Shown here in pieces: positions 6,438-60,510 of a stretch of 64,000 nt of DNA (the stretch's first letter is position 1; every line of letters begins with the position of its first letter). Where the stretch lies: the sequence record PQ309151.1, one strand, 5' to 3'. The notes under the pieces are model-generated. The model was given only the letters and a program-made list of their open reading frames with translations. It had not been told where the DNA came from and ran no database searches. The position numbers were made by a program, and so were the translations under genes.

Positions 6438-6471
6438 CATACACACCTGGGCTTACGCCCAGGTGTGTATG
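6438..6471. terminator. Hairpin between convergent genes (CATA-stem-GTAA loop-stem-TATG)
   Basis: CATACACACCTGGGC-TTAC-GCCCAGGTGTGTATG, perfect 15-bp inverted repeat, no U-tract. Confidence 0.7.
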
Positions 6472-12276: not shown

Positions 12277-12320
12277 CATAGGCTCCTACTCCTAGCCGCA
12301 AGGCTAGGAGTAGGTCTATG
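12277..12320. terminator. Hairpin between convergent genes (GCAA loop, CATA/TATG flanks)
   Basis: CATA-ggct-CCTACTCCTAGCC-GCAA-GGCTAGGAGTAGG-tc-TATG. Confidence 0.7.
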
Positions 12321-13029: not shown

Positions 13030-13032
13030 AAC

Positions 13033-13614: not shown

Positions 13615-13617
13615 GAT

Positions 13618-14196: not shown

Positions 14197-14199
14197 AGT

Positions 14200-14793: not shown

Positions 14794-14833
14794 AGGAAAC
14801 CCGTATTAGAAGTTCAGTGTCATAGGATCCGAA

Positions 14834-14872
14834 CATAGACCTCCTACTGGGCTTTCGCCCAGTAGGAGTGTC
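14834..14872 (-). terminator. GAAA-loop hairpin followed by TATG on the minus strand
   Basis: CATA-gac-CTCCTACTGGGC-TTTC-GCCCAGTAGGAG. Confidence 0.65.
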
Positions 14873-14873
14873 A

Positions 14874-17411: not shown

Positions 17412-17449
17412 ACATAGACCAATACCGGAGGCCTCTCGGCCTCCGGTAT
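17412..17449 (-). terminator. GAGA-loop hairpin followed by TATG and a T-rich run
   Basis: ATACCGGAGGCC-TCTC-GGCCTCCGGTAT with CATA at 17413-17416. Confidence 0.7.
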
Positions 17450-17451
17450 CG

Positions 17452-18003
17452 TCATTTCTTTGGCGGTTGATTACCCGACTGTTGAGCCAACATCTTCTCC
17501 AATTGCTTGATGGCGCTGCTTCCACCACCCAGCAATTTGGCACTATGCTTCTTGGCCGAGTTAATCACCTTCAAGAAATCGCGTCGAGGATAACGAATTA
17601 ACTCATCGAACGAAAACCCGAAGATTTCATGCACGCGGTTCTCAGCGAACTGGTCGAGACGGAAGTCCAACGGATCCACACGAGCCAGATCCTCAAGCGG
17701 CGAGCAGAAGAGCAGAGGCCACGGAACGTTCTTGTCGTCCGGGGCATCGTGATTGTAAATGCCAAAAGCGGTTTCGTACTTCATCCGCATGAACAATTCC
17801 GCATCCACCACGTTGGGTAGCTTGGCGTTGGTCATGGCATCCAGAATCACGTTTACCGGAGACCGGTTTCTGTCTTCTACTCTCGCCAACTCGGGTTCTA
17901 GTCCGATGTGTCCTCCAGACTCCTCGATGAGAGTCCAAGCAACTTCTGCTCGACCAGCTGAAAAAAAACCGATACCGCATCGACCGCGATGAGGCGAGGC
18001 CAC
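17452..18003 (-). CDS. Probable conserved phiKZ-like protein; true start probably downstream, near 17830-17890
   Basis: The first ~35 codons overlap the upstream gene; the core AELFMRMKYETAFGIY...FGFSFDELIRYP looks coding. Confidence 0.5.
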   Translation of the reverse strand: MASPHRGRCGIGFFSAGRAEVAWTLIEESGGHIGLEPELARVEDRNRSPVNVILDAMTNAKLPNVVDAELFMRMKYETAFGIYNHDAPDDKNVPWPLLFCSPLEDLARVDPLDFRLDQFAENRVHEIFGFSFDELIRYPRRDFLKVINSAKKHSAKLLGGGSSAIKQLEKMLAQQSGNQPPKK

Positions 18004-19424
18004 TTGTCGCCGGACACCGTGTCCTCGTACTCGTTGACCGAGGTCGTCGCAATAATTGCGACTTGTGTGTTGTTGATGTAATCGCTGATCGCCTTGAAGA
18101 ACTTCTTGGAGATCGAGTCGGAAGCCGACAAGGACACGAGAACCTTGTCCACGTTTTCACGCGTGGTGTACAGTTCGCCGTCTTCCTCGATCGACTTGAC
18201 GTAGTGCGAATACTGGCGCAGACGGGAAGCCTTAGCCAACTGGCTAATGTACTGCATGCGCTTCTGGTCGGTTGCTTCTGCGCCGAGAGCTTCGTGAACC
18301 GCAGCGTTGATCTCGTTGATCCACTTCTCGCCGGAGTCGAAGTACTCTCGCAGGCTGGGCGTGTACAGATGCAACTTCACGCCATCGCCGATGTCGACAA
18401 CCGTGTTCTGGTTGAAGACGAACTGGTCCTTGTAGTCCTTGATCGTCTTGAGCGTCATCGGCTGTTCGATACGCTTGACCATGTGTGCCAGTTGCTCATC
18501 CTTGAACATCTTGCCGTTCATGAAGAGCGCCTTGCGCAGGTCGATGATCTGCGAGATTTCTTCCTTCGGCAGCTTCGTGTCTTCTGTGAAGACCGCCCGG
18601 GACATCGGGAAGCCATTCGGGTAGACCGAGTTTGCGACCGACAGAGCGATCAGAGGCAAGTCGTTGATCGTGATATGGTCGACCAGGTTTTCCTTGGGCA
18701 GGTCGTTGACAGTCGTTTCGACGAGCGATGCGAGCCATGCTTCGGTAACAGCTTTGGCCGTGAAGACCGCGTTGTTCGCGAACATGAGACCATGCGTTGC
18801 GCGGCCGAGTTTGATCGGCTCAGCAATGATCGTGCGCCACAGACCGATGATGTCGTATTCTTCCAGCGGCTTGACAGTCGCGTAGAAGCCCGAACCCACC
18901 AGCGGAACCTGAACGGGCGAACCCAGTCCCAGTCGAGCACGCACCGACAACGTCAGGCGTTCCGAACTCATCTTCGAGCCACGACCCTTGTTCGAGAACT
19001 TGGGACGACCCACGTTGATGTTCTGGCCGGCGTACGTCAGAGCATTGCGCCATTCAGCATTCGGATCTGCCAGTGCGTCTTCGAATACGCCATGAGCAGG
19101 AACCGAACGGAAGCCGTTGAGCAGCGTCTGATACCAGTTCACCGCGTCTTCGTTGACATCGACGTCACCCATCTTGGATGCAGCCATGTCGTCGTTGACG
19201 CGACTTGCCGTGTCAGGCAGAAGAGGAATCAGGATACCCTGAAACTCCTTCAGTTCTTCTTCACCCGGAGCAGGCGACATGAGAGGCGTCTTGCTCTCCC
19301 AGTTCTTTGCCTGCTTGGGCGTCACGACGTTCTGCGGGTCGATGCTGACCGGCGTTTCGTCGGGCATGCGCAGTTCGGCATCATCTGCCGGACTTTGATT
19401 TTCGTCTTCAGGAGCGATTGCCAT
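17898..19424 (-). CDS. Conserved virion/baseplate-hub-like protein (phiKZ gp77-like)
   Basis: 508 aa; GLGSPVQVPLVGSGF motif recalled from phiKZ-like phages; synteny next to the vRNAP subunit. Confidence 0.5.
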   Translation of the reverse strand: MAIAPEDENQSPADDAELRMPDETPVSIDPQNVVTPKQAKNWESKTPLMSPAPGEEELKEFQGILIPLLPDTASRVNDDMAASKMGDVDVNEDAVNWYQTLLNGFRSVPAHGVFEDALADPNAEWRNALTYAGQNINVGRPKFSNKGRGSKMSSERLTLSVRARLGLGSPVQVPLVGSGFYATVKPLEEYDIIGLWRTIIAEPIKLGRATHGLMFANNAVFTAKAVTEAWLASLVETTVNDLPKENLVDHITINDLPLIALSVANSVYPNGFPMSRAVFTEDTKLPKEEISQIIDLRKALFMNGKMFKDEQLAHMVKRIEQPMTLKTIKDYKDQFVFNQNTVVDIGDGVKLHLYTPSLREYFDSGEKWINEINAAVHEALGAEATDQKRMQYISQLAKASRLRQYSHYVKSIEEDGELYTTRENVDKVLVSLSASDSISKKFFKAISDYINNTQVAIIATTSVNEYEDTVSGDKWPRLIAVDAVSVFFQLVEQKLLGLSSRSLEDTSD

Positions 19425-22530: not shown

Positions 22531-23550
22531 ATGGCAACGGAACAACAAGCTGGTACGCAAGACGGCGCAACGCAAGATCAGGAAGCAGCGAAGGCAGCTG
22601 CCGCCGATCAAGCCGCTCAGCAACAAGAGCAACAGGACAACGCTGGCGATGCAGCCAAGGAAGGCACGACTGTGTCTGGCGATTCGAAGGGCGAAACGCA
22701 GACGGTTGCCAAGGAAGACGTCGGCAGCGTGACGGACGCTCTCGGTCTGGGTCTCGCCGGTGATGCTGCGACCGCAGCAATCGCAAGCGCTACCGACGCA
22801 GCTGCGGCACAAGCTGCTGCCGACAAACAAGCTCAAGCCGACGCAGCCGCAAAGCAGGCACAAGCAGATGCAGATGCACAAGCTGCTGCCAAGGCTGCCG
22901 CTGCCGCTGCTCCTGCTACGGCAACGGTTCGCAAGACCATCCCCGCTCCGGCAAACGTCGCAACGGGCGCAAAAGCACCGGCTCCGACCACGGCAACGAC
23001 TCCTGCTGCTGCTGTTGTCACGCAACAAGTCGCGGCCGCTGCAACGGTCACCAACACGGCTGCCGCTGCTCCCGCGAACGATCGCGATCTGCCCGAAGTC
23101 GTCGCTGCAATGAAGGTTGCGAAGCCGCAAACGCAATCGGCGTTGTATCAGGTCATTCAGTACGCTGCTGATCTGAACCCGCTCAAGCGGGTGGAACTGT
23201 CGACGATCGAACAAGCCCAGATCAATCTGCGCTCGAATCTGTTCACGATCCTGTCGGCGGAAGACACGAACTTCAAGGTCGTGTACCAGGCACTGCTCGC
23301 AATCGTCCGTGCACACAAGAACAACTGCTTCGCGATCACGGCTCGCAACCGCGGCCTGAACACGGTCAGCGTAGCAGCGCTCGACAACAAGGGCATGCGT
23401 TTCCTGACGAAGATCGTCGATCTGCTCGTTCTCACCGCCGGCACCAACAATCTCGAACAAGTCAAGGCTCACTACGACTTCTCGAAGATGGCTGAATGGT
23501 GCCCGAACGTGCGCATCCAGCAGAACCTGACGTCGTACTACTCGGCTTAA
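22531..23550 (+). CDS. Protein with ~190-aa A/Q/D/T-rich disordered N-terminus and a folded C-terminal domain
   Basis: 339 aa; GGAGA RBS; sharp compositional break at about DRDLPEVV. Confidence 0.7.
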   Translation: MATEQQAGTQDGATQDQEAAKAAAADQAAQQQEQQDNAGDAAKEGTTVSGDSKGETQTVAKEDVGSVTDALGLGLAGDAATAAIASATDAAAAQAAADKQAQADAAAKQAQADADAQAAAKAAAAAAPATATVRKTIPAPANVATGAKAPAPTTATTPAAAVVTQQVAAAATVTNTAAAAPANDRDLPEVVAAMKVAKPQTQSALYQVIQYAADLNPLKRVELSTIEQAQINLRSNLFTILSAEDTNFKVVYQALLAIVRAHKNNCFAITARNRGLNTVSVAALDNKGMRFLTKIVDLLVLTAGTNNLEQVKAHYDFSKMAEWCPNVRIQQNLTSYYSA

Positions 23551-23565
23551 TCGCAGCAATGCGGT

Positions 23566-23609
23566 CATAGACATCCTCCTGGCGCAAGCCAGGAGGATGT
23601 CTAGTTATG
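23566..23609. terminator. Hairpin between convergent genes (GCAA loop, CATA/TATG flanks)
   Basis: AGACATCCTCCTGGC-GCAA-GCCAGGAGGATGTCT, 15 bp. Confidence 0.7.
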
Positions 23610-25993: not shown

Positions 25994-27346
25994 TTACGGT
26001 TGCAGCGTGTCGGTTTCGTCAGCAGCAGCTGCGCCGTCTGCATCTGCCTTCACTTCGGTTTGAGCCGGAGCTTGTGCATCTGCTTGCGGTGCGACTTCTG
26101 CCGTACCTTCAGCAGCCGGGGCTGCGTCGACAGCGGGAGCAGCGACTTGTTCAGCCGTTGTGTCCACTGCCGGCGTTTCCACGGCCGGAACTTCTGCTTG
26201 CGCTTGTGCAGCGTCGGTTTCCACCGGCGCAGCCGTTTGCGCTGCGTCAGCAGCTTGTTCCACCGGAGCAGCGTCGACCGGAGCGCCTGCGAGTGCAGCT
26301 GCCGTTGCCGGATCTGCATTCACTTCAGGCGTTTGGGCCAGAGCTTCGGGCGAGTGATCGACTTCAGCCGGAGCATCGGCGGTTTGTTCCACCGCAGGAG
26401 CTTCGGTTTGAGCCACATCACCAGCCGGTGCGGTTGCTTGTTCTGCAGCGGGGACTTCAGCTTGAGCAGCGTCTGCTGCCGGGGCATCCACCTGTGCTGC
26501 AACTTCCGGTGCTGCTTGCTCGCCGGCGGCGGGGTCGACTTCCGGGGCAGCTTCTTGAGCCACGCCTTCGTCGGCTGCGCCAGCCGGTTGAGCTTGTTCA
26601 GCAGCAGTGTCGGTCGTTTCAGCTGCAGCTTGGGCCGGTACTTCGGCTTGAGCATCTGCTGCTTGATCGACGACTTGCGGAGCTGCGTCAACCGGGGTTT
26701 CAGCTTGCGCTTCGCCAGCGGCCGGATCCGTTTCTGCTACTGCGGGAGCTTCCGGCGTTTCCACCGGTGCTACGTCTGCGGGCTGTTCCACTGCGGGTGC
26801 AGCTTGTTCAGCCGTACCTGCATCCGTGCCCGCTGCCGGATCTTGAGCAGCGTCGCCAGCAACTGCGGGAGCCGCATCTGCCGGTTGTTCTGCTTGTGCG
26901 TCGCCTGCCGGCGCTGCATCGGTCGTGCCAGCGTCAGCCGGTGCGTCGACTTGTGCCGGGGCATCGCCCGTCGGTTGTGGTGCATCGGCGCCAGTGTTGT
27001 CTGCCGGAGTAGCAGCCTGGTCACCCGTCGATGCGTCCGCTTGCGAAGCGTCCGTACCTGCGTCTTGTTGTGCTGCGCCGTCAGCGATCTGGTTGTCCAG
27101 TTCAGCTGCGGCTGCGCCAGCGGCTGCGGCGGCTGCCGTACCATTGTCGCCCAGACCGAGTGCTTCGTTCGTGGTGTCGCCGAGAGGTGCGTCTTCGGCT
27201 GCCGGCGGAACGATCGGATGGTCTTCTTTCTTCTTGTGGAAGAGGCTGATAACGCGGTCGAGCACGTGCTCGGGCAGTGCGGCGAGGGCTTCGATCGCCA
27301 GGATTTCGGTCTTCAGTTCGTCGAGAACTTTGTGGATGAGGCTCAC
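25994..27346 (-). CDS. Acidic Ala/Pro/Glu/Asp/Gln-rich intrinsically disordered protein with degenerate repeats
   Basis: 450 aa; AAGGA RBS; ~40-aa helical N-terminus, then ~400 aa almost devoid of K/R and aromatic residues. Confidence 0.8.
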   Translation of the reverse strand: MSLIHKVLDELKTEILAIEALAALPEHVLDRVISLFHKKKEDHPIVPPAAEDAPLGDTTNEALGLGDNGTAAAAAAGAAAAELDNQIADGAAQQDAGTDASQADASTGDQAATPADNTGADAPQPTGDAPAQVDAPADAGTTDAAPAGDAQAEQPADAAPAVAGDAAQDPAAGTDAGTAEQAAPAVEQPADVAPVETPEAPAVAETDPAAGEAQAETPVDAAPQVVDQAADAQAEVPAQAAAETTDTAAEQAQPAGAADEGVAQEAAPEVDPAAGEQAAPEVAAQVDAPAADAAQAEVPAAEQATAPAGDVAQTEAPAVEQTADAPAEVDHSPEALAQTPEVNADPATAAALAGAPVDAAPVEQAADAAQTAAPVETDAAQAQAEVPAVETPAVDTTAEQVAAPAVDAAPAAEGTAEVAPQADAQAPAQTEVKADADGAAAADETDTLQP

Positions 27347-32390: not shown

Positions 32391-32426
32391 GCACACTACC
32401 AGGGCTTTCGCCCTGGTAGTGTATGC
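32391..32426 (-). terminator. GAAA-loop terminator after the helicase gene
   Basis: ACACTACCAGGGC-TTTC-GCCCTGGTAGTGT; T-tract on the minus side and TATG on the plus side. Confidence 0.75.
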
Positions 32427-39794: not shown

Positions 39795-39833
39795 TACTAC
39801 TGGATCCCGTGAGGGATCCAGTAGTACCTTATG
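39795..39833. terminator. Hairpin between convergent genes (GTGA loop, TATG)
   Basis: TACTACTGGATCCC-GTGA-GGGATCCAGTAGTA-cct-TATG. Confidence 0.7.
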
Positions 39834-41489: not shown

Positions 41490-42947
41490 TTAATAGCTGA
41501 AGTTACGGCCCGAACCGCCTGCGTTCATTCCAGTTGTCGAAAGGATTTCTTCGAACAGGCTGTTATAGTCACGGGCCGCATCGCGGATGTCTTGCCGACT
41601 GTTGGTCAGAATCGGCGACGTAAGAGAATTGCAGAAGCACGGGAATACATAGCGGCCATGGTTCTCGCCATCATAGAACAGCTTGAAGTCGATTTCCCCG
41701 AACACACGGCACTTGACTTGCAGGCCGATAGTTACGCGGTCTTCCGCGGTGATCGGATACATCAGTTCATCGATGATGCGATCTTCGAACTGGTCAACGA
41801 ACCAGGCCAGATCCACGTCCTTTACGAACGACTTCGCGGTTGTCGGAACGAACTCGAACGGCTGTTCGTGCGAGGCTGTCTGATTATGAATCTGGAAGTC
41901 CAGTCGATGAAGACCGGTTTCCATCATCAGAGCAGGAACAGCAACCTGAATCAGGGATGCAATCTTGTCCCATTCTTCACCGCCGTTCACATCGTTGGAA
42001 TCGAGGTGATACTCGGTCATCGCCTTCGACTCATTGTCGAACAACTTCGTTTCCGTACGACGTTCTGCTTCCGGATCGATATACAGCAGATCCTTGAACG
42101 TGAAGTTGTCGGTGGTGGTCGACAGATTGCGCGCGTTCGAGATTGCACGCAGGAATACGTCATCGGACGTATACGACTCCTGCACATAACCTTGAGCCGT
42201 CGCATTGACGTCGAGTACCGAACCGCCGAACTCGGTGTTGTCGATTGCCTTGCGGCGCGATTCGAGAACACGCGACATATACCGCGAACCGATACGATTC
42301 GAAGTCGAGCTCTTCACAGAGTTCTTCGACAGAGTCGTACGCAGATCCGTGAGATCGTCCACCAGCTGACCAGTCTCTTCAGCATCCAGCGACGAATAGA
42401 TATCTTCCGGACGCATCGTGTACAGCGTTTCGCCACGACGACGCAGGCCGGCGTTTTCACGATCCGACAGAACGTCTGCTGCGCGAGCCGGCATGTACAT
42501 GCGACGGAAACCGCCACGAGAATCCGGGATCATCCGTTCTTCGAGCATGAACGTATTGTTGACATAGAACTCCATGTCATGATCCACGTTACGCGTGGTA
42601 AAGCCGACCGAGTTGGTATAACCCATCACGACCTGCTTGAGCCTGTCGCCGGTTCCGATCTGGATATCCAGCGTCAGAATGAAACGACCACGCCGTGCAT
42701 CCCAACCATTCGGCACGTCAATGATGCCGCGCGTATTGAACGACGGAACCATGAACTGGTTGGCGATCTGTGCCAGCATCGACGGCGTGAAACGCCTGGT
42801 CTTTTTGTAACGTTCTTCGACACTGTCGAGGAGCCCACCGGAGAAGTGGGTTTCATACGGACGGAGAAACTGATCCTGAAACGTAGCCGACTCCGCAATG
42901 ATCAGCTCTTCAACGTAAATCTTGATGTCTTGACGACCTTGGCGCAT
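41490..42947 (-). CDS. picA: Phage-nucleus protein import factor PicA/Imp1-like (phiKZ gp69-like)
   Basis: 485 aa; FLRPYET and MRPEDI motifs; position between gp68-like and gp70-like genes (recalled synteny). Confidence 0.65.
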   Translation of the reverse strand: MRQGRQDIKIYVEELIIAESATFQDQFLRPYETHFSGGLLDSVEERYKKTRRFTPSMLAQIANQFMVPSFNTRGIIDVPNGWDARRGRFILTLDIQIGTGDRLKQVVMGYTNSVGFTTRNVDHDMEFYVNNTFMLEERMIPDSRGGFRRMYMPARAADVLSDRENAGLRRRGETLYTMRPEDIYSSLDAEETGQLVDDLTDLRTTLSKNSVKSSTSNRIGSRYMSRVLESRRKAIDNTEFGGSVLDVNATAQGYVQESYTSDDVFLRAISNARNLSTTTDNFTFKDLLYIDPEAERRTETKLFDNESKAMTEYHLDSNDVNGGEEWDKIASLIQVAVPALMMETGLHRLDFQIHNQTASHEQPFEFVPTTAKSFVKDVDLAWFVDQFEDRIIDELMYPITAEDRVTIGLQVKCRVFGEIDFKLFYDGENHGRYVFPCFCNSLTSPILTNSRQDIRDAARDYNSLFEEILSTTGMNAGGSGRNFSY

Positions 42948-42963
42948 CTTTTAGCCCTCTATT

Positions 42964-44535
42964 TTAAAAAGTGTACAACGAAATGTAGTTCGCATTTCGC
43001 CCTTGTACGTAAATGGCATAATCAGCCAATCGGTTCCGAATGTCGTACCCCACTCGGTAAGTTTTGTTTGCAGCGCTCTGACGAAACTCTGCGATTTGCT
43101 CCTCGGGCAGATTCAGAAACCATGTATGGTCAGACAACAGCTGAGCCAGATCCATGATCTCATTCACTGCATCGTTGTTGGGCTTTACCTGTTTCTTCGT
43201 CGGATGGCGACGGTAGTACGGGTAGAGCTCATTGAGTTTATCGATCTTGTCCTTCGTGATGTGGGCACGGGACTCCTGACTATACGAACCATAGCCTTCT
43301 GCGTTCATGCTGCGTGCAGTCGGCAAACCGGCCAGATCCTTGAACTCGGTGTTCCACAGAACGAACTGAGCGATGCCTGCCAAGCGCAAGATGCTGGACT
43401 TGTTGATGTCCCACAGCGCACGCGGACTGACGATCGGATTGACCACCCACTGAATCAGACGGATCTGACATTCTTCCAGTGTGTGGGTCGCCATGTGTTC
43501 TGCTGAGTCCATTGCCTTTTCGAGTTCTGCTGCCTGTTCTTCAGACAGTTCGTTCTGAAGCAACAGACGCGCTGCGATCTCCCGATAATACTCGGTCCAC
43601 TTTTCGATCGCAGTGAACTCACCCGGAGGCACCAGGGGTTTGTTCTTGTACTTCTCCGCACGAGACGAGGAGTCTTCACTCGAATCATCTTCGTTCGGAT
43701 TGATCTTCTCCAGAATCGCGTTCTGATGGCTGTCGTTTTGCGACAACCGATTGCGAAGCGACTTGTGGATGATCTGCACCAGATGCGTATCCGACGGATG
43801 TCGCGTGAAGCTTGCGATCACGAGAGCACGAACGAGAATGTTCGCAACCAGGTTCGTCTGAAACACATCCGAGCCAATGCCGTCGATCGAGGAACGGATG
43901 TTGATGTCGTCCTGCTTCACGTTCTTCGCCACATAGTGACTCAAACGCTGCATTGCAGGAGACTCTTCGATCGAAGACTTCGAGATCGTGAAATACGTAT
44001 TCAGATCTCGGAAGGTCGGGCCCGATTCCTTCTTGGTGATTTCCGAGAACTCACCCCAGATCGGCGCGATTGCTCGAAGCTTGATCACCATGAACACGAG
44101 TTCCCAATAGTCGGCGACCAGATAAGTCTGTTCGCGGCTGCCAGGTTTCTCGTGTGTGAACTTGTACTCCACATCCAGATCTTCAGGAATCCAGATGCCA
44201 CCATGATACCGAGTCCAACGCTCGAAATCTTCAGTATCGTGGATGTTGACGATCTCGTTGATGATCGGCCGCAAAGCCAGAATCAACGGATTCACATTGA
44301 ACGTTTCGTTGAAGACGTTCTTTGCCTGGCGATACAGATCGAAGATTTTGTCCTGAAGTTCGATGTCGATCCGCTGCCAATACTTATTGATTTGCTGAAA
44401 CGGTTCGTACGTTCCTTTCTTGAAAGCTTGTCCATAAACTGCTCCACTGAACTCCAGGGTCTCCCCACGGTGTTCGATGTAGATCATCCCGTTTCCAGCG
44501 ACGCCTGCGTGTTGGAATTTCGCTTGCATCGACAC
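42964..44535 (-). CDS. Non-virion RNAP promoter-specificity (sigma-like) subunit, phiKZ gp68-like
   Basis: 523 aa, matching the recalled size of gp68; helical; syntenic between ChmC-like and PicA-like genes. Confidence 0.7.
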   Translation of the reverse strand: MSMQAKFQHAGVAGNGMIYIEHRGETLEFSGAVYGQAFKKGTYEPFQQINKYWQRIDIELQDKIFDLYRQAKNVFNETFNVNPLILALRPIINEIVNIHDTEDFERWTRYHGGIWIPEDLDVEYKFTHEKPGSREQTYLVADYWELVFMVIKLRAIAPIWGEFSEITKKESGPTFRDLNTYFTISKSSIEESPAMQRLSHYVAKNVKQDDINIRSSIDGIGSDVFQTNLVANILVRALVIASFTRHPSDTHLVQIIHKSLRNRLSQNDSHQNAILEKINPNEDDSSEDSSSRAEKYKNKPLVPPGEFTAIEKWTEYYREIAARLLLQNELSEEQAAELEKAMDSAEHMATHTLEECQIRLIQWVVNPIVSPRALWDINKSSILRLAGIAQFVLWNTEFKDLAGLPTARSMNAEGYGSYSQESRAHITKDKIDKLNELYPYYRRHPTKKQVKPNNDAVNEIMDLAQLLSDHTWFLNLPEEQIAEFRQSAANKTYRVGYDIRNRLADYAIYVQGRNANYISLYTF

Positions 44536-44595: not shown

Positions 44596-44606
44596 AGAGG
44601 GTTTTC

Positions 44607-44632
44607 ACATGGAGGGCGAAAGCCCTCCATGT
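44607..44632. terminator. GAAA-loop hairpin
   Basis: ACATGGAGGGC-GAAA-GCCCTCCATGT. Confidence 0.65.
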
Positions 44633-44654
44633 GTTTAGTTTATGTGCTTACTGC

Positions 44655-49424: not shown

Positions 49425-49450
49425 ATATGACCAGGTTTCCCTGGTCATAT
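49425..49450 (-). terminator. GAAA-loop terminator
   Basis: ATATGACCAGG-TTTC-CCTGGTCATAT with a T-tract on the minus strand. Confidence 0.7.
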
Positions 49451-52202: not shown

Positions 52203-52243
52203 AAAAAAGAAAATAGAGAGATCCCCGAAGGGATCTCTCTATT
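52203..52243 (-). terminator. chmA terminator (UUCG loop plus U-tract)
   Basis: AATAGAGAGATCCC-CGAA-GGGATCTCTCTATT followed by TTCTTTTTT on the minus strand. Confidence 0.8.
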
Positions 52244-52273: not shown

Positions 52274-54220
52274 TTACCAGCGGTTGTCGTTGCGATCCGC
52301 ACGATCGAAGTAACGATCGTCGTAACGGTCACGCGACTGACGCTGATTGCGATACAGACCACCGCTACCCGGACGGGCCAGGATCGTATCGATGTTGCCA
52401 TACGTGGTGCGATAGCGATCGCTGCCATCGCGGCTCGACGAGGTCGGGTTGAGCGACAGCTTGCAACGGCTGATTGCTTCGATCAGCGCTTCGTCGAAAC
52501 GGGTATCCCAGTTGTAACGCTGGAAGAAGCCCGTGATGACGGCGGTCGGCACGAAGTCACGGATGATTTCGTAGCGTTCCGATTGCGACAGCGTGTTGTC
52601 GTCGTTCGACGCAGCAGCCATGCCCCACTTCTGGATCAGAAGCAGGTCGTCTTCCTTTTCCGGACGCAGCATGTTCAGCAGCGCCAGATAGTCGAAGTCG
52701 CGCAGGTCGAGGCGCATGCCGCGATCGCCTTCCGTGTAGTAACCGCCATGGATCCGCTCGACGTGGCTGTCAAGGATCGGTTCCGTACGGTCGTACAGGT
52801 CTTCGAAGTGACCATCGGTCAGCACGCAGCACGCATCATAGATGCGGTCCATTGCCTTCTGGCTGCCTTGTGCAGCTGCCATCAGGTCAACGTGCTGCCA
52901 CGTGGACGAACCGCATTCCGGCACGTCGATCGAGTGGATCACACCCGGACGCACAGTGGTGCGGATCAGAGCTTGACGCTTCGCAGCGGTGAAGCTCGCG
53001 TTCTTCGTTTCCCAGCGCTCGCCGAAGCCGCGTTCCAGATCCTGGAGGTTGGGTTCGATGGCCAGCGCGCCGATGTTGCGCATGTCGTCTTCACCGACCG
53101 AGAGGTTCGGTTCGAAGGCACGCATGATCTCGGCCGACTCACCAACTGCATGAGCCGTGGCGTGAGCCAGCATCATGGTCGTCGGCGAGAAGTCGACGGT
53201 GTCGGTGAACGTGTTGATGAAGCGCAGTGCATACAGCTGGCACTCTTCGCTACGGCGATCGCCACGACGAGCGTAGAGATCGTTGCGGCTCGATGCGCCG
53301 TCCGCCGGAGCGTAGACGAAATCGAAGTAGCCGCCGACGCGGGAGATGCGGGTGCCCGTCACCAGCTGGTCGATCGGATCACGGCTGTTGCGGCCACGGT
53401 TTTCGCGGGACACCAGGTCGATGATCATGTCGGCACGGACCGGCAGATGGCCACGATCGTAGATGTGGTTCTGACGATGCTGGATGTGCACCGAGTTGTA
53501 GCTGTCGTCGTCGGCCGACAGACGCAGTTGCGGAGCGTCCGGGTCGTTGCGATCGATTGCCGTCTTGATGGCAGCGAACGAGTTCTTCACGCAATCGGCG
53601 ATTGCTTGCGGATCGTCCTTGGCCGTCGGGAAGCCACCATAGATGACTTCGGCATCTGCCGTGAACAGGTTCTCGCCCGGATACGCGTTGGCCAGAACTT
53701 CCTTGACCACGTCGCGAACCTTCGAGTCGTAGCCGTCGCCCGGCACTTGAACGACCGTCACGCGATTGCTGCGATAGCTTTCTTCACGCGGACGCAGCTC
53801 TTCGGCCGAACCGGCGAGCAGGAACGTGTGATAGCCGACGCCCAGCTTTTCCTTGCCACGCTTCTTGCCCGCGACGACGATGCAGGAGAACGGGATGCCG
53901 GCGACCGATGCATCGATCGGGAACAGCTGGCAGTCGAGCATGTTGTTGTCGGTCTTGGCCGGCATGGCTTCCACGAAGTCACGACGGAAGACTTCCAGCG
54001 CTTCGGCCGTACCCGTCATTGCGATGGGGGTCGGGTTCATGCGGCCGATGTTGCTCAGCGATGCGTAGCGTGCGCCGCCGGATTCACGGCTTTCTGCACG
54101 ACGCGACTGGCGTTCTTCTTGTGCTTGCTGATCTTGCTCGCGACGATCGCCACCCTTCTCTTGCGCACGGCGCATTGCGTCACGGACTTGCGATTGCTGA
54201 TCTTTGCCTTCGATGCTCAT
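52274..54220 (-). CDS. chmA: Chimallin, major phage nuclear shell protein
   Basis: 648 aa; immediately upstream of the NADFDGD subunit, as for phiKZ gp54; very strong codon bias; strong early promoter; disordered termini. Confidence 0.85.
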   Translation of the reverse strand: MSIEGKDQQSQVRDAMRRAQEKGGDRREQDQQAQEERQSRRAESRESGGARYASLSNIGRMNPTPIAMTGTAEALEVFRRDFVEAMPAKTDNNMLDCQLFPIDASVAGIPFSCIVVAGKKRGKEKLGVGYHTFLLAGSAEELRPREESYRSNRVTVVQVPGDGYDSKVRDVVKEVLANAYPGENLFTADAEVIYGGFPTAKDDPQAIADCVKNSFAAIKTAIDRNDPDAPQLRLSADDDSYNSVHIQHRQNHIYDRGHLPVRADMIIDLVSRENRGRNSRDPIDQLVTGTRISRVGGYFDFVYAPADGASSRNDLYARRGDRRSEECQLYALRFINTFTDTVDFSPTTMMLAHATAHAVGESAEIMRAFEPNLSVGEDDMRNIGALAIEPNLQDLERGFGERWETKNASFTAAKRQALIRTTVRPGVIHSIDVPECGSSTWQHVDLMAAAQGSQKAMDRIYDACCVLTDGHFEDLYDRTEPILDSHVERIHGGYYTEGDRGMRLDLRDFDYLALLNMLRPEKEDDLLLIQKWGMAAASNDDNTLSQSERYEIIRDFVPTAVITGFFQRYNWDTRFDEALIEAISRCKLSLNPTSSSRDGSDRYRTTYGNIDTILARPGSGGLYRNQRQSRDRYDDRYFDRADRNDNRW

Positions 54221-54522: not shown

Positions 54523-55602
54523 ATGCTCAGCATCTTCAACGACCTTCAACCCAGAGTGAAAGGTATCATCAGCTTCCCTGAATGGACATTCATTCGTGAT
54601 GGCTTGATGATGAACCTGGATCACACAAACAAGTACTATCGCAGCAGTGCTTATGCGGTAGGTTCTGATCACGAACTGGTGAAACTGTTGTTCGGTTTGA
54701 CTACCAGTACGGAAGAAGATCTGAACACCTATTACAAACGCGTCGATGCCAAAGCGTTGACGGTTGCTCAACAATTGGGATTCACGACCTCTATCAGTAA
54801 GGGACACATGTTCAACAATGTGTTCTTCTCGGGTAAGAGCCGCGAAGTCATCATCGTTCATAACGAAGACTTCGATCCCCAGGAAGTTACGGAGAACTGG
54901 AGAGATGCTCGTCCGATTCAAATCCTGCGTCATGGCTTTGACTTCATCGATTGTTTTCCTATGCAAGGCCAGCTGGAAAGCAATGGAGTCTCAGTCTTCG
55001 CGATCAATCTGTCCATGCTCGGCGTGCAGTATCGAGCGTATCGCCAGTGGCAGAAAACGTTCGTAACGGAAGAGACGGGTCGAGCTTCGGTCTACTCTTT
55101 TCTGTTCAACTATCCGCTGAACAATCTGATTTACGATGCGATGGATCATGCGGTGTTTAACCGTCTGGTTCGACTGAGTCAGAATCTGCCCACGAGCGAT
55201 AATCAGTATCGTCATCCGTTCCATGTGACGAACTTCGTGGGACGAGTGGATCGAATCCTGGGTAAGGTTCTCGATGTACTGAACAACAACCCACTCGACT
55301 TTTACAACATCTGCGCCACGATCCCTCTCATCAATAGCGGCAGTCTGTTGAATCTGTTGAGACTTCCGGACCTCTATGAATCGCGGCAAATCAACTGGGC
55401 TATTTACATGGCTCGGATCGATATGCTCCTGTTCCTCTTGAGCTTCGAGAACAATCTGAAGATGATGAACCAGAGCGAACTGAGCAAGATTAAGTACGAA
55501 CTGAAGCTGTACCTGAAAGACGGTACGATTCAGTCTGCCGTGCCTCGCGATCTGTACGGTAAGCAAAAGCTCGTCATCGAACGACTCGTTGAAAAGATGT
55601 AA
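54523..55602 (+). CDS. Conserved virion-associated protein (phiKZ gp52-like by synteny)
   Basis: 359 aa, divergent from chmA; YYR...AV...H.LVKLL pattern. Confidence 0.55.
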   Translation: MLSIFNDLQPRVKGIISFPEWTFIRDGLMMNLDHTNKYYRSSAYAVGSDHELVKLLFGLTTSTEEDLNTYYKRVDAKALTVAQQLGFTTSISKGHMFNNVFFSGKSREVIIVHNEDFDPQEVTENWRDARPIQILRHGFDFIDCFPMQGQLESNGVSVFAINLSMLGVQYRAYRQWQKTFVTEETGRASVYSFLFNYPLNNLIYDAMDHAVFNRLVRLSQNLPTSDNQYRHPFHVTNFVGRVDRILGKVLDVLNNNPLDFYNICATIPLINSGSLLNLLRLPDLYESRQINWAIYMARIDMLLFLLSFENNLKMMNQSELSKIKYELKLYLKDGTIQSAVPRDLYGKQKLVIERLVEKM

Positions 55603-55604
55603 TT

Positions 55605-55643
55605 CATACACTACCATCCCTTGCGGGATGGTAGTGTATTTTT
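55605..55643. terminator. Hairpin between convergent genes (GCAA loop on minus strand, TATG)
   Basis: ATACACTACCATCCC-TTGC-GGGATGGTAGTGTAT, 15 bp. Confidence 0.7.
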
Positions 55644-55648
55644 GCTGT

Positions 55649-56302
55649 CTATAGTAACCACAACTGAAAACGCTTTAGCAATCCGACATAAGCATACGTC
55701 GAACTAAGGTCGTCCGAACATCCGAACGCCAGGTATGTGTCGCCCGGCTGAGTCAGATCAGAATACGTCGACGTGACGCCGGTTCGATTATTTTTGACGG
55801 TATACGTTCCGTTCTGTTTGGTGAGTACCATCTGTTCCAGTACAGCACCAGGGTAAGTTACACCACCCAGATAACACCGAGAAAATGTAGTACCTGTCGA
55901 CAGGAAAGCCTGGAAGTATTGACTCGTCTGATTCAGGTTAAGAAGAAGACCAGGCTGATTGCCGTGTGCGTTGTAATCGCCCGAACGGAACAAAACCTTG
56001 GACGAGGCTGCTGATTGAGGAACAAAATCAACCTCAAGCCGATAAGGTTTATTACTGAATTGAAGAAGGTTGGCGCAATCGAAATATGTCAGACCAGTGA
56101 ACTGGTAGCATTTTCCAAATGTCGGATCATTGATTACGCCGTCAGTTGGCGAACCAGAAATCACATGTCGAACAAATGTTCGAGCACCTGTACCATTGTC
56201 GACCAGGTTCTTATCCCCAACATTGGCGGAATCGAACTGGATACTGAGAACAGCTGTCGTTGCTGTCGCTGATTTCTTTTTTAACAATAAAGCTTCTTGC
56301 AT
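55649..56302 (-). CDS. ConA/LamG-like beta-sandwich protein, LLLKKK-tagged
   Basis: MQEALLLKKK; FGKCYQFTG...YRLEVDF...GLLKRFQLW pattern. Confidence 0.6.
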   Translation of the reverse strand: MQEALLLKKKSATATTAVLSIQFDSANVGDKNLVDNGTGARTFVRHVISGSPTDGVINDPTFGKCYQFTGLTYFDCANLLQFSNKPYRLEVDFVPQSAASSKVLFRSGDYNAHGNQPGLLLNLNQTSQYFQAFLSTGTTFSRCYLGGVTYPGAVLEQMVLTKQNGTYTVKNNRTGVTSTYSDLTQPGDTYLAFGCSDDLSSTYAYVGLLKRFQLWLL

Positions 56303-56306
56303 ATCG

Positions 56307-56909
56307 TCACCAGGCGCTATATCCGGCCGGAAGATTGTTAATCATATCCAATCCGGCTAAGAGTTGAGCTGAACTGTTCGTACCGCCCGCTGCTGCACCC
56401 GAGAGCATCGGATAAAATGTCGTGGCATTGCTGTATGCCGTCGTCGAGAAAGATGCCTGAGCAACACCATTCCGATAAAAGCGCACGGTCTTGGTTCCCA
56501 TGTCGAGTGCGACACCAATGACGTCGCCTACCCAAAAATAGGTACCATAAACAAAACGAGATCCGTTTGCATACAGCATGTACGAGTTAGTTGTGTTGTA
56601 GGAATACCAAAGAAGCTCGTCAGAACTTTGCCAGGCACGATACAGCGAAGTGGTTGAAGGTGCGATACCGATGCCGGGTGTATAGCCAGTGCTTCCACTT
56701 TCAGCGCCAAGTATTTTGACTTCGAAGTACCACTTGCCAGAAGAACGACCAATCGTTCCTCGAACTGCACCACCGACTGAAGAATCGAAGGTAACAGTTT
56801 TATTGTCGGTTGACAAAGTCACTCCACTGGAGTACTTGTCGTTCGTATTCAGAAGAAGACTCGACGGCTGTTTGACGGTCTTCTTATAAAGAAGGTTAGC
56901 AGCAAGCAT
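56307..56909 (-). CDS. SPRY/B30.2 domain protein with a variant tag (MLAANLLYKK)
   Basis: SGKWYFE...GDVIGVALDM...FYRNG...FYP; ends PAGYSAW. Confidence 0.8.
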   Translation of the reverse strand: MLAANLLYKKTVKQPSSLLLNTNDKYSSGVTLSTDNKTVTFDSSVGGAVRGTIGRSSGKWYFEVKILGAESGSTGYTPGIGIAPSTTSLYRAWQSSDELLWYSYNTTNSYMLYANGSRFVYGTYFWVGDVIGVALDMGTKTVRFYRNGVAQASFSTTAYSNATTFYPMLSGAAAGGTNSSAQLLAGLDMINNLPAGYSAW

Positions 56910-57580
56910 TAGATCAGTCCCCCTGCAGGAGGCGTGAAGTTAGCCGTAATGATGGCAGAATTCCAGAAGCCCCATTCGGCGGTATACAGGTTCGTACCGG
57001 ATTGACCGATAGTCATACTGTTGTAATTGATCACCGACGTGTTGTCGGAAAAGCTAGGATTGTTATATGTGCTACCAGTGCCGTTTGCTAGCTGGACCAG
57101 AGTACCATTAATGTAAACAGTATTTACTCCAGCTTTACGCTGCATTGCGACATGATACCATGCCGATGCCAGGTTGGTCGTAGTGATGCTGGTATCCCAA
57201 CAAGTGGCGATGGTACTCATGGCATAACCCATCTGAAGGCGCCAGCCAAATCCGCTATCTCCGGTACGGATCGTCATACCGCTACTCAAAAACGTCACAT
57301 AGTTACTGGCGCTAGTGAGTAATACGCGCATCATCACGGTGTAGTCAGCAGTACTAGATCTACTACCGGTCGCATAGTTGATTGTGTCTACCCCTTTCAT
57401 CGCCTGCGTATAACCAGCAAGCGAAATGGGAAGAGATACTGGTGTCCCAGCAGTATGACTCGTAGGCGTGATGGTTCCGGTCGATACGTTCGAGCTATAG
57501 TTCCAGCCCCAATAAGGCTGTATCGAGTTGAGCCCACCGCCGCTACTCACTTTCTTTTTCAAAAGTAGAGGTTCAAACAT
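56909..57580 (-). CDS. ConA/LamG-like protein, LLLKKK-tagged
   Basis: MFEPLLLKKK; YTVMMRV...WYHVAMQR...TVYING...ANFTPP. Confidence 0.7.
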   Translation of the reverse strand: MFEPLLLKKKVSSGGGLNSIQPYWGWNYSSNVSTGTITPTSHTAGTPVSLPISLAGYTQAMKGVDTINYATGSRSSTADYTVMMRVLLTSASNYVTFLSSGMTIRTGDSGFGWRLQMGYAMSTIATCWDTSITTTNLASAWYHVAMQRKAGVNTVYINGTLVQLANGTGSTYNNPSFSDNTSVINYNSMTIGQSGTNLYTAEWGFWNSAIITANFTPPAGGLI

Positions 57581-57581
57581 A

Positions 57582-58175
57582 TCAAATCCTGATCACCGTC
57601 AGTTCAAGAAGTTGCCAGGTACAAGGGAATGCATACGTTCCCTGGATAACCTGTTCGGCTCCATTCAGGTAGCTTCCTAACACCCAATCCCAGGTATTCG
57701 AGAATGTCCCAGGATAGTTCAGGGAATAAATCTGGGTGCCGTTGAGCGTAATGGTGTAAACACCATTGACTCTTTTAAAAACAAGAACCTGCTCAATTCC
57801 AAAACCTGAGATCGAGCCACTGGTTGTAGCCAGAAGGTTGTCATAAACATACTCGACTGCTTTATTTGCATTGACTGAGATCATCCACGAAGGAGCATCA
57901 TTGCCCTGTTTGTATCGTGAAAGAAGATCCAGTCGTGTTCCACCAATTGTAGTCACTTTAAAACGAATTGTGATCTGACAATTTTCAGCAACTGGTGAAG
58001 GTGTTCCAGAATAAGGAATTCGGATGTAGTCTACTACCGAGCCGCCTGCAAACGAATACGTGTTACCTGTTTTGGTCACTCCAGCTGAATTGGAAAGACC
58101 TCCGCCCCAGCTTGCGATAGTGATGCCTGAGCCGCCTACTACAGCAGACTTTTTCAGAAGGAAAGCTTCATGCAT
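57582..58175 (-). CDS. ConA/LamG-like protein, FLLKK-tagged (true start 58175)
   Basis: MHEAFLLKK; ITIRFK...LVFKRVNG.YTITLNG...WVLG. Confidence 0.65.
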   Translation of the reverse strand: MHEAFLLKKSAVVGGSGITIASWGGGLSNSAGVTKTGNTYSFAGGSVVDYIRIPYSGTPSPVAENCQITIRFKVTTIGGTRLDLLSRYKQGNDAPSWMISVNANKAVEYVYDNLLATTSGSISGFGIEQVLVFKRVNGVYTITLNGTQIYSLNYPGTFSNTWDWVLGSYLNGAEQVIQGTYAFPCTWQLLELTVIRI

Positions 58176-58213
58176 AAATGTCCCGCAATTGTATTCAATC
58201 ACAGTATCGACCA

Positions 58214-58239
58214 CCTACCTAGCCTTTCGGCTAGGTAGG
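58214..58239 (-). terminator. GAAA-loop hairpin after the DNA polymerase gene
   Basis: CCTACCTAGCC-TTTC-GGCTAGGTAGG. Confidence 0.6.
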
Positions 58240-58249
58240 ATGGATTCGA

Positions 58250-60400
58250 TCAATACGTATCGTAGATCATTCGCGTGTTCTTCTTGTTGCTCATGAAGAT
58301 GCCAAAAGTTTCAAGAATGTGGTAGTAAGCACCACAGCAATCCCGCACAATCTTCCGTGCGTTGGAACCAACCAGGATCTCATCCGGGATGCCAGACATC
58401 TGGATGATACTGACCGGAACGTAAATCGTCGTCATGTACTTGCGACCAATCTTGGCGCATTCGGCTTCGATATCTTTCACGAGATCTTTGTTCTTGATCT
58501 GTTCGAGATATATTTGCCAATCCGACACGTTTCCGATTTCCAGAGAAACCTTCATCGACGTGTATGGAGGTTCATCGACCATGCCGTAGATCTTACCGAA
58601 CGTATTGTTCCAGAAAATGTGATTCCAGTACGGCGTTCGATTCGGATCTTTGATTTTGTACGCATCAGCCTTCTTCAGATGAGCGGCACGGAAGTATTCC
58701 GTATTACCTGACTTAACGTCTTCATAGATCGTCCATTCTTCTTCGGCGACCATGTCGATGATTTCATTCAGGTTCAGTCCCTTACCGGCAACCACATCAA
58801 CCATGCATTGCAGCAGGAAGTCTTTCACTTCCTTCACAATCGCCCCAGGTGTAGCCGAGGAGATCATGTTCGCACCCTTCAGTTCCAGGTCAGGCTTACG
58901 GAATACGTTGCCTTCCTGAGCGGTCTTCATGGCGTAGTAATGCTTAGCCATCGAAGTCGGGCAGAAGATCTTGAACTTGTACTCGTTCTTCATCTGCACG
59001 TCGAACAGACGATCCGGATGGACGCCATAGTTCGCAGACATCATTGCATGCAGGTGAGATGACGTTTGTGCAGCAAGATACACCACGACGTCAGAAGTCG
59101 ATTCCATTTCGTCCGTGAAACCGATTGTGCCGTAAACACGACCAACCCATTCCTGAACCGTAAACAGAGTCGAGTCGGTATCGCCACCGAGAACCGAACG
59201 GCGAAGACTGGTTGGGAAGTTACCCGTGGATGCAGGCATGTTACCCGAGAGCCAGAATGCATCAATGATCGGCTGTACAGCACACAGCGTATTGTTGATG
59301 TTCTTGGCATTGGTTGCAAGTACGCCGTAGTTATGCGGCGATTCCTTCAGGATTTCCTTCGGCTTCTTACCGACGGAGAAGGAACGGCAAATCTGACGCG
59401 ACAGGTTAACGGTGTCTTCCGAAACCGTCTTAAGGACAAACTGCGCCTCATCGAGCGGCATCGTTTCATCGATAAACCGGGACAGCTGGTTCAGCAACGA
59501 GACAACGAAATCCTTGTTGTGTTTATAGAGGTGATAGAAGTCACCAACATAAACGAATGCTGCACGCTCAAGCGGTTTCATCGCATCGACGAAATCCCAC
59601 ACAGGCTGCATGTGCTGATTCGACTGGAAGTACAACTGACGACTACGTTCGATACACTCGTTGACGTCTTCTACAGTCGGCCAATGCAGACCGAACTTCG
59701 TCATTGCTTCTTCGACCTTATCCAGATCGCTGATAGCGCAGATCGACACGAGGTTGTTCAGGATCGTGTCGCGATCCATGTAGTGGCGGTTGCCTTCGAT
59801 GAACTTTTCGTTGTTCGCGTTTCCGTACGCAGTGGTGTTCCGGCAGTTTGTCGTAAGCGACGAATGCGAAGTCGGATTAAATAGAGCCGTCGACGGAGTG
59901 AGGGACGCTCCGGAGAGGGAGTTGTTTGTCGTCTTTGCATTGTTCTGTCCGAGATCCTTAAACACATAGAGAACCATGTCCCCAGCATTCTTGGCATCGA
60001 ACATCTGATCTTTGAGCACTGAACGCTTAACGATGTTATCCATCGTGTAAAGTGACAGCAGCGATTGCCGGACATCCGGCGAGCAGTACGACGTAAACGT
60101 CGGAGACATCGATTCGTTATTGTCGAACACGTCGGCAAGATAACGCGACATCGTGGTTTCTTTGAGCTCACGATCTTCGAAGTTTTCGCGATGGAGATAT
60201 TTCACCATCGGATCCCGGAACTCAAACAGACCGCCGGGTTTCATGTTCTTGATCACAAACTCACGTGCAGCTTGCATCGTGATTCCCTTTCTCTTGGAGA
60301 GAAAGAGCGATGCCTGGTCTACATAACCGTTGAGCACTTTCGTGTCACGGCGGTAGTCCTCTCGTTCTTTACGGAAAGTAACAGGTCGCAACTGATGCAT
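58250..60400 (-). CDS. polB: Split family-B DNA polymerase, catalytic (palm) subunit (phiKZ gp50-like)
   Basis: Motif B AKTTNNSLSG, motif C GGDTDSTLF, KHYY...ELKG; start at MHQLR (60400) has an AGGA RBS. Confidence 0.9.
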   Translation of the reverse strand: MHQLRPVTFRKEREDYRRDTKVLNGYVDQASLFLSKRKGITMQAAREFVIKNMKPGGLFEFRDPMVKYLHRENFEDRELKETTMSRYLADVFDNNESMSPTFTSYCSPDVRQSLLSLYTMDNIVKRSVLKDQMFDAKNAGDMVLYVFKDLGQNNAKTTNNSLSGASLTPSTALFNPTSHSSLTTNCRNTTAYGNANNEKFIEGNRHYMDRDTILNNLVSICAISDLDKVEEAMTKFGLHWPTVEDVNECIERSRQLYFQSNQHMQPVWDFVDAMKPLERAAFVYVGDFYHLYKHNKDFVVSLLNQLSRFIDETMPLDEAQFVLKTVSEDTVNLSRQICRSFSVGKKPKEILKESPHNYGVLATNAKNINNTLCAVQPIIDAFWLSGNMPASTGNFPTSLRRSVLGGDTDSTLFTVQEWVGRVYGTIGFTDEMESTSDVVVYLAAQTSSHLHAMMSANYGVHPDRLFDVQMKNEYKFKIFCPTSMAKHYYAMKTAQEGNVFRKPDLELKGANMISSATPGAIVKEVKDFLLQCMVDVVAGKGLNLNEIIDMVAEEEWTIYEDVKSGNTEYFRAAHLKKADAYKIKDPNRTPYWNHIFWNNTFGKIYGMVDEPPYTSMKVSLEIGNVSDWQIYLEQIKNKDLVKDIEAECAKIGRKYMTTIYVPVSIIQMSGIPDEILVGSNARKIVRDCCGAYYHILETFGIFMSNKKNTRMIYDTY

Positions 60401-60510
60401 TTGTTCCCTTTTCCTAAGGTTGACAGCAAAAAAAGATGAAATCCCGTAAAGCATCCGAAGATCACTTTACGGGACGGATTCAAACTATGCAGTGACCTAA
60501 CAAAAAAATA

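Follow-up and report, generated by a model that had tools for sequence, protein, structure and literature searches.

Ralstonia phage RsoM3USA, a phiKZ-like, nucleus-forming jumbo phage, carries a set of small genes, the products of which begin with a common peptide of about ten residues (hereafter the tag) and continue into folded domains of dissimilar families. Four of these genes form a compact minus-strand array, here called cassette 2, at positions 55649-58175 of the stretch analysed (the window; 64,000 nucleotides, bases 124001-188000 of the 225,638-bp record PQ309151.1), and four more form cassette 1, on the same strand at 12325-14793. The layout of each protein is the same: a ten-residue N-terminal peptide (M-x-E-x-h-L-L-K-K-K), a short linker of Ser, Thr, Gly and Ala, and a compact beta-sandwich head. 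We infer, with about as much doubt as confidence, that the tag is a short docking peptide, by which interchangeable lectin-like heads would be mounted on the periphery of the virion.

The four open reading frames (ORFs) of cassette 2, separated by 4, -1 and 1 nt, are real, and their products start exactly as the first-pass annotation of this DNA had quoted them. The product of c2a (55649-56302, 217 amino acids (aa), PHROG 6011) joins the tag MQEALLLKKK by a short Ser/Thr/Ala linker to a ConA-like (LamG-type) beta-sandwich at residues ~17-217; the gene is unannotated in GenBank, where the record has instead an ORF of 258 nt on the opposite strand inside it (56015-56272, plus strand, ACEO27_00201). 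Next come c2b (56307-56909, 200 aa), with the tag MLAANLLYKK and a SPRY domain, c2c (56909-57580, 223 aa), with MFEPLLLKKK and a LamG-type domain, and c2d (57582-58175, 197 aa), with MHEAFLLKK and a ConA-like beta-sandwich. By blastp, c2b is paralogous to the three SPRY genes of cassette 1 (33-40% identity) and c2c is homologous over its full length to gp108 of Serratia phage PCH45 (33% identity), while c2d has distant homologues (29.5% identity) in FLC phages, about 100 kb away from this locus, and a homologue in a 424-kb metagenomic phage contig that is without the tag. The SPRY genes end with a tryptophan codon and stop as TGGTGA (12966-13032, 13551-13617, 14133-14199 and 56240-56306, minus strand), and because this ending puts a Shine-Dalgarno-like GGTGA a few bases ahead of the next ATG, it suggests that translation may be coupled along the arrays of tagged genes.

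When a loose pattern was applied to the whole genome, the part outside the window being scanned in separate pieces, the tag was found at the start of 13 of the 275 RsoM3USA ORFs that encode 150 aa or more; in 500 trials in which residues 2-40 of each ORF were shuffled, matches numbered 1.05 on average and never exceeded 5. Within the window, a six-frame scan places the tag at the starts of the four cassette 2 genes and three cassette 1 genes, a looser pattern adds the gene at 14200-14793, and the only other match is a chance ORF of 24 codons. Among the 13 members the leading residue accounts for a share of 1.00 at Met1, 0.54 at Leu2, 0.69 at Glu3, 1.00 at Leu6, 0.92 at Leu7, 0.69 at Lys8 and 0.92 at both Lys9 and Lys10. 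The leucine codons of the tags vary (CTT, TTA, TTG, CTA, CTC, CTG) and the 30 nt upstream of the starts are unrelated among the tagged genes. Since the leucine codons thus vary synonymously and the upstream DNA differs, selection acts on the peptide, and comparison of codons, paralogues and domains bears out the earlier view of the tag as a protein-level feature carried by dissimilar heads. Two nucleic acid interpretations were ruled out, namely a DNA repeat or recombination site (the flanks are unrelated and the leucine codons not fixed) and an RNA hairpin arising from the complementarity of leucine and lysine codons (the codons vary and the flanks differ).

A different explanation would deny the tag any docking role and regard it as an inherited start kept for expression, that is, an AT-rich, lysine-codon-rich 5' end favouring initiation, possibly with a slippery A-rich run, which was spread by duplication of one ancestral gene, the bodies of the copies having since diverged beyond recognition. 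The first ten codons are very AT-rich relative to a genome of about 51% GC, the lysines are encoded by AAA-AAG in seven of the 13 genes, several of the heads are detectably related to each other (blastp among the paralogues), and the four cassette 2 heads all have the ConA-like superfold. However, the core of the tag in distant phages is M-x-E-x-L-L, often without lysines (phiKZ, PhiPA3), which is the signature of a peptide and not of base composition, while leucine and glutamate are retained through synonymous change; the tag also stands on discoidin and gp083-like heads, which are not ConA-like, and the same head families occur without it in other phages. We therefore hold this the least probable of the explanations considered here. 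As to the lysine codons themselves, the AAA-AAG pair can be found, for example, within the first 30 nt of the tagged genes at 56273-56302, 57551-57580 and 13585-13614; a TTA before it creates an in-frame A-AAA-AAG in three genes, and five are without. The in-frame run resembles a known slippery heptamer.

The assignment of the heads rests on several kinds of comparison. SPRY (PF00622) is matched by c2b at 46.4 bits against a cut-off of 26.3, and SPRY domains in the PDB are matched down to E = 1e-8. For c2c the score against Laminin_G_3 (PF13385) is 25.4 bits, just under the cut-off of 27.6, and the tagged paralogues at record positions 17898, 42444 and 43240 pass the same model with 45-51 bits. 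Neither c2a nor c2d has a match in Pfam, and searches of PDB sequences with a c2a profile and with c2c returned nothing meaningful. The c2a family profile comprises 96 metagenomic cluster representatives at 50% identity, nearly all of 210-230 aa, and its alignment was used for AlphaFold2, which returned an all-beta sandwich at ~17-217 with a mean pLDDT of 94.5, the average for residues 1-10 being 57. The model of c2d, from an alignment of six sequences, has a pLDDT of 80.1, with residues 1-12 below 50 (pLDDT 40). In Foldseek both models match ConA-like folds with E-values of 1e-5 to 1e-18 and TM-scores of 0.6-0.85, among them CBM40/66, the lectin-like domains of sialidases, PL7 lyases, galectin, phage tailspikes and phage LamG proteins; the sequence identity to these matches is 8-16%, so that the similarity is one of fold only. 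The ConA-like subdomain of the clostridial neurotoxin binding region is also matched, at about 10% identity, as a generic fold match.

Taken together, Pfam, AlphaFold2 and Foldseek assign to all four cassette 2 heads a predicted ConA-like superfold, comprising three mutually dissimilar LamG-type domains and one SPRY domain, as the first-pass annotation had proposed. Its count of eight tagged genes in the window likewise holds. They fall, however, into two fold classes and not the three that it named, because SPRY and LamG are both members of a single ConA-like superfold, the second class being the gp083-like domain encoded at 12325-13029. A discoidin (F5/8 type C) head is found only outside the window, together with further LamG heads, such that the tag is carried by at least four head families among the 13 genes (SPRY, Laminin_G_3, F5/8 type C and gp083-like). 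In the models the tag lies outside the folded domain, as an extension of low confidence before a confident sandwich. A conserved peptide of this kind, placed beyond the fold, joined to it by a flexible linker and borne by interchangeable binding domains, is most simply understood as a short interaction motif. On the docking reading, the peptide would attach each head non-covalently to a common outer site on the virion, and the phage would display a mixed set of lectin-like adhesins.

The content of cassette 2 varies among close relatives, as had been supposed, with four genes in RsoM3USA, three in RSL2, three in a 220-kb ENA contig and two in RSF1. The RSL2 cassette consists of a different tagged LamG gene lying across the origin of the record (its two pieces were translated separately), followed by a SPRY gene and a LamG gene, and that of the ENA contig of a LamG gene, a SPRY gene and a c2a-like gene; a counterpart of c2d at this locus is missing from RSL2, RSF1 and the contig alike. 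The core genes place RsoM3USA nearer to RSL2 than to RSF1: the gene for the C-terminal half of the DNA polymerase next to the cassette (polC) is 94% identical to that of RSL2 and 86% to that of RSF1, chimallin 96% and 90%, and the conserved 359-aa protein encoded on the other side of the cassette 93% and 81%. The SPRY gene c2b, at 62% and 80%, is nearer to RSF1, and the LamG gene c2c is 69% identical to its RSL2 counterpart and 38% to that of RSF1. Because the content of the cassette and these identities are discordant with the core genes, the heads evolve much faster than the scaffold, with gains and losses of genes and the exchange of at least one. Vertical co-evolution of the heads with the core genome, which had been named beforehand as the pattern that would speak against repeated acquisition, was not seen, the identities of both c2b and c2c departing from that of polC. 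The polymerase-side cassette is a place where such genes undergo duplication, loss and replacement and pass from one related phage to another, with retention of the tag. The public records of RSL2 and RSF1 shorten the orthologous cassette genes (segments 1-1359, 4751-5433 and 46-1343), and the origin-spanning tagged LamG gene of RSL2 is unannotated.

The tagged genes of RsoM3USA are spread over five loci, these two cassettes among them, and encode single-domain products of ~155-240 aa. Cassette 1 lies between the N-terminal half of the polymerase (10514-12274, plus strand) and the thymidylate kinase gene tmk (14874-15611, minus strand); its first gene (12325-13029) encodes the phiKZ gp083-like domain, annotated 'virion structural protein' in PHROGs, and the other three (13033-13614, 13618-14196 and 14200-14793) encode SPRY domains, all on the minus strand. 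In the record the SPRY genes at 13033-13614 and 13618-14196 are labelled 'thymidylate kinase', the true tmk being that at 14874-15611, and the former is annotated from an internal start (13542), which cuts off the tag. Outside the window five tagged genes lie at record positions 17898-18557, 22720-23322, 42444-43172, 43240-43965 and 43968-44438. Two of the outside genes are each followed by a gene, at 18561-19088 (plus strand) or 41753-42442 (minus strand), the product of which starts with repeated units of the type Y-A-K-x-x-G-x-W-K; the two products are 43% identical over their first 58 aa and may be partner proteins of the tagged proteins.

Tagged starts are also found in PhiEaH1 (gp002 and gp003), Cronobacter phage CR3 (gp255), PCH45 (gp108 and gp109) and Erwinia phage RAY (gp114), and in three tandem genes on an unrelated metagenomic contig, while phiKZ gp083 and PhiPA3 gp080, gp081 and gp083 start M-F-E-L-L-L or M-M-E-S-I-L, without the lysines. 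In the c2a family the start M-x-[ED]-x(1,2)-hydrophobic-hydrophobic is shared by 69% of the 96 representatives, and a basic pair lies within residues 6-14 in 44% of them. The conserved core is M-x-E-x-L-L, the KKK run being a feature of the Ralstonia/Burkholderia phage group. Since CR3 is a phage of the Vequintavirinae, the tag extends beyond the nucleus-forming phages. Some members of the head families have no tag, for example the relative of c2d in the 424-kb contig and the gp083-like domains of an SPN3US-like phage; tag and head are separable modules. A wider proposition, which we advance tentatively and doubt more than we believe, is that M-x-E-x-L-L(-K-K-K) could be a general docking code of many large tailed phages, chimalliviruses and others, by which one conserved acceptor site would accept any small beta-sandwich head; the set of tagged genes would then be the adhesin repertoire of the phage, turning over at loci like cassette 2.

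The link with the virion derives from these other phages and is indirect for RsoM3USA itself. In PCH45, the genes of which we numbered by order (YP_011108384 being gene 1, on which count the 33rd gene has the size expected of the capsid protein gp33), a block of five minus-strand genes at 115500-121585 corresponds to gp107-gp111. A recent preprint based on transposon sequencing (Tn-seq) and proteomics (doi 10.64898/2025.12.19.695335) reports the gp107-gp111 operon, which includes the tail fibre gp111, to be essential and detected by virion proteomics, and equates gp111 with PhiPA3 gp164. By blastp, gp108 pairs with c2c (33% identity, full length), gp109 with the product of 12325-13029 (29% identity), and gp111 with the collagen-repeat fibre of RsoM3USA (record 108426-112109, minus strand); gp110 pairs with a DUF4376 gene next to that fibre and gp107 with a DUF1353 gene. 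In Pfam the annotated tail fibre of RsoM3USA shows collagen triple-helix repeats, the DUF4376 and DUF1353 genes coming after it, and the offset alignments of this fibre to gp111 probably reflect the collagen repeats. The tagged genes of the PCH45 fibre operon thus have their nearest RsoM3USA relatives in the two polymerase-side cassettes. Furthermore, phiKZ gp083 and PhiPA3 gp080, gp081 and gp083 are annotated as virion structural proteins, the annotations of the PhiEaH1 and CR3 tagged proteins also count toward the link, and phage CBB has a close fold neighbour that bears the name 'Structural protein', the record concerned taking its names from electrospray tandem mass spectrometry (ESI-MS/MS) of particles or from homology to other proteomes. 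The first-pass annotation had taken the tagged proteins for a variable receptor-binding repertoire, and homologues in other phages, through the PCH45 operon, phiKZ gp083 and the CBB protein, are tied to virions. Because of these links and of the fibre operon, we favour docking at the tail-fibre or peripheral-baseplate apparatus, which would be the likeliest acceptor site. A 'gp114' listed in Agricanvirus mass spectrometry was considered as the tagged RAY gp114 and rejected, since this number follows the Deimos-Minion scheme for RAY gp110 and is uninformative here.

Several observations count against docking on the virion. The statement on proteomics and essentiality in PCH45 concerns the operon as a whole and not each of its genes; the structural atlas of phiKZ, in which 40 proteins were modelled, makes no mention of gp83, nor do the phiKZ interactome and Tn-seq papers; and the NCBI note on phiKZ gp083 speaks of a head protein and not a tail protein. 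Ten residues are very short for a stable anchor, and the acceptor is only a candidate. SPRY and LamG domains can bind proteins as well as sugars, and both cassettes lie among genes for replication and nucleotide metabolism, on the same strand as polC and tmk, a position that fits non-virion proteins too.

A different possibility is that the tagged proteins are intracellular accessory factors, variable binding modules directed at macromolecules of the host or the phage during infection, for instance in counter-defence or takeover, with the tag as a signal for localisation, stability or partner binding in the cell. The cassettes are co-directional with polC and the thymidylate kinase gene; tagged homologues follow thymidine kinase in RAY and adjoin genes of nucleotide metabolism in CR3; accessory loci typically turn over fast beside conserved genes; the best-known role of SPRY domains is the binding of proteins; and no signal peptide is evident in the starts of the tagged proteins. 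Yet in several phages homologues have been annotated as, or reported to be, components of the virion, other tagged RsoM3USA genes come after a spike-domain baseplate gene and virion structural genes, and the heads find their best matches in fold among carbohydrate-binding modules and tailspikes. A signal for import into the phage nucleus in particular is at odds with the presence of the tag in CR3, outside the nucleus-forming family. On balance we judge an intracellular function unlikely, if by no means negligible. The association with nucleotide metabolism is itself recurrent, the neighbours being thymidine kinase in RAY (segment 3356-4666), PRPP synthetase and NAMPT in CR3 (segment 6001-9454) and thymidylate kinase in RsoM3USA (window 14200-15611).

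The annotation of phiKZ gp083 as a 'structural head protein' raises a further alternative, in which the tag would be a signal for incorporation into the head, like the capsid-targeting peptides of T4, and the lectin-like domains would be packaged in or attached to the capsid. Tandem small genes with a common short N-terminus do recall the T4 internal-protein loci. The related 'paralog family B' of SPN3US, with 20 members, was found in tailless particles (PMC5694885); the members in SPN3US-like phages nonetheless share only the C-terminal domain and are without the tag, and we accordingly rejected this family as an instance of tagged head proteins. The prohead-protease motif of the phiKZ type, small-residue-x-Glu (PMC5694885), does not bound the tag, in which Glu occurs only at position 3, after Met-x, and is absent in four of the 13 members. 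Lectin-like heads would in addition make little sense in the interior of the capsid, and the PCH45 homologues sit in a tail-fibre operon. We consider incorporation into the head quite improbable.

The genomic setting of the cassettes is more ordinary than the first-pass annotation implied. Besides chimallin (52274-54220; Pfam Chimallin_Phikzvirus) the window encodes an annotated PhuZ tubulin and a split family-B DNA polymerase, of which the C-terminal half, polC (divDNApol; 58250-60454, minus strand; PF20286, E = 6e-280, in agreement with the record), lies upstream of cassette 2 on the same strand, and the N-terminal half is 32.5% identical over ~600 aa to phiKZ gp082. Each cassette does adjoin one half of the polymerase, but the use of this adjacency as a sign of acquisition was overstated: phiKZ gp082 and gp083 are arranged convergently, just as the polymerase N-half and cassette 1 are, and the position of cassette 1 is ancestral synteny shared with phiKZ. 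Cassette 2 was also said to lie between the polymerase and a virion gene; the polymerase is indeed there, but the gene on the other side (54523-55602, plus strand, 359 aa) is a gene conserved across chimalliviruses with no assigned function, the label 'putative structural head protein' for its family occurring in a single phiKZ-like record. Elsewhere in the window an acidic, low-complexity protein of 450 aa, rich in Ala, Pro, Asp, Glu and Gln, is encoded at 25994-27346 (minus strand), in the most GC-rich kilobase (GC 0.65, with strong AT skew).

The hairpins reported to bound cassette 2 are likewise real. That at 55606-55639 (a perfect stem of 15 bp with a 4-nt loop and a T-run on the plus strand) stands between the convergent genes 54523-55602 and 55649-56302 at the distal boundary of the cassette, and that at 58214-58239 (a perfect stem of 11 bp, the loop reading GAAA on the minus strand) separates the polymerase stop from the first cassette 2 gene; this second hairpin is also present, with compensatory changes in its stem, in RSL2, RSF1 and the ENA contig. 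No special meaning attaches to them, however, since the window holds 12 perfect hairpins with stems of 11-16 bp, all with 4-nt loops, and those located relative to genes are intergenic. Four of the 12 bracket the two cassettes, those of cassette 1 being at 12285-12314 and 14841-14868, and the others are at 6438-6471, 17422-17449, 23568-23603, 32393-32422, 39795-39826, 44606-44633, 49425-49450 and 52212-52243. The hairpins likely constitute the general punctuation of transcription units in this phage group; they mark the cassettes as separate units without giving them a signature of their own. A 15-nt stretch directly after the 58214 hairpin (58196-58213, minus strand) shows no variation among RsoM3USA, RSL2, RSF1 and the ENA contig, the next spacer being variable; it was considered as a recurrent promoter-like motif and rejected, being unique in the window. 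A scan for sigma-70 promoters gave fewer promoter-like sites than in shuffled sequence. Cassette 2 is also, as claimed, AT-richer than its surroundings, but modestly so: the window has a mean GC content of 0.513 (standard deviation 0.025 for windows of equal size), compared with which cassette 2 stands at 0.473, in the lowest 3.7%, and cassette 1 at 0.472. These values are low without being extreme, the immediate neighbours are below the mean as well, and the special meaning given to the composition was overstated.

Lectin-type domains in jumbo phages were noted earlier by Iyer et al. (PMC7824862) and in the S13 and FLC6 genome papers, and the principle of a shared N-terminal anchor is also known already; what appears to be new is the shared tag, of which the literature searched gave no account. 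Little is understood of how nucleus-forming jumbo phages recognise their hosts, and in two recent virion structures most of the peripheral baseplate and of the fibres is without a model. A peptide of ten residues marking a whole class of small lectin-like proteins would allow candidate adhesins to be picked out by a simple rule on sequence in the genomes of jumbo phages, in which such genes at present are called 'hypothetical', carry wrong annotations or are overlooked; it would also indicate where on the particle an acceptor site lies, and would explain how binding repertoires can change quickly on a fixed virion scaffold.

Among known systems, the branched receptor-binding proteins of Klebsiella phages offer a close parallel in principle, a short conserved N-terminal peptide anchoring a second depolymerase on the first. 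A short N-terminal anchor, interchangeable receptor-binding bodies and the exchange of genes between phages are common to both. The Klebsiella proteins are, however, large trimeric beta-helix depolymerases of small podo- and myoviruses, one or two per phage, with a known anchor partner, whereas RsoM3USA would have 13 small, probably monomeric, lectin-like domains with a putative one.

The internal proteins of T4 with their capsid-targeting sequence (PMC5694885) resemble the tagged proteins in being encoded by tandem, hypervariable small genes with a common N-terminal peptide of about ten residues, but the T4 peptide, which terminates in a protease site and is cleaved off, sends the protein into the interior of the head, whereas the RsoM3USA tag is without a cleavage motif and its heads are lectin-like. 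The group of phiKZ gp083, PhiPA3 gp080-083 and SPN3US paralog family B shares the domain of 12325-13029, and phiKZ gp083 itself starts M-F-E-L-L-L and is convergent with the polymerase N-half; these proteins differ in having ~500 aa or other N-terminal modules, the SPN3US-like members are without the tag, and none of the four cassette 2 genes encodes the domain. The tail-fibre paralogues gp131-gp135 of phiKZ, which form a hetero-hexameric fibre (PMC13250141), are likewise paralogous virion proteins of a chimallivirus that combine a shared N-terminal attachment segment with different C-terminal heads; they are large proteins in which a folded N-terminal domain and a helix build a six-helix bundle, unlike the ten-residue peptide and single-domain proteins of ~200 aa in RsoM3USA, and no sequence relation between the two sets was found. 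In the DUF7941 filament proteins (Goslar gp22/gp23 and relatives; PMC13742148) a docking module used throughout the family bears carbohydrate-binding or host-recognition domains and is proposed to reside on the peripheral baseplate, the docking being predicted to occur via a disordered segment added to the sheet of the partner. No match to DUF7941 was found by Pfam in the tagged proteins or in ten other proteins of the window, the presence of the model in that copy of Pfam being unconfirmed. DUF7941 is a globular domain with a linker, reported to be exclusive to chimalliviruses, whereas the tag of RsoM3USA consists of ten residues and extends to a phage of the Vequintavirinae.

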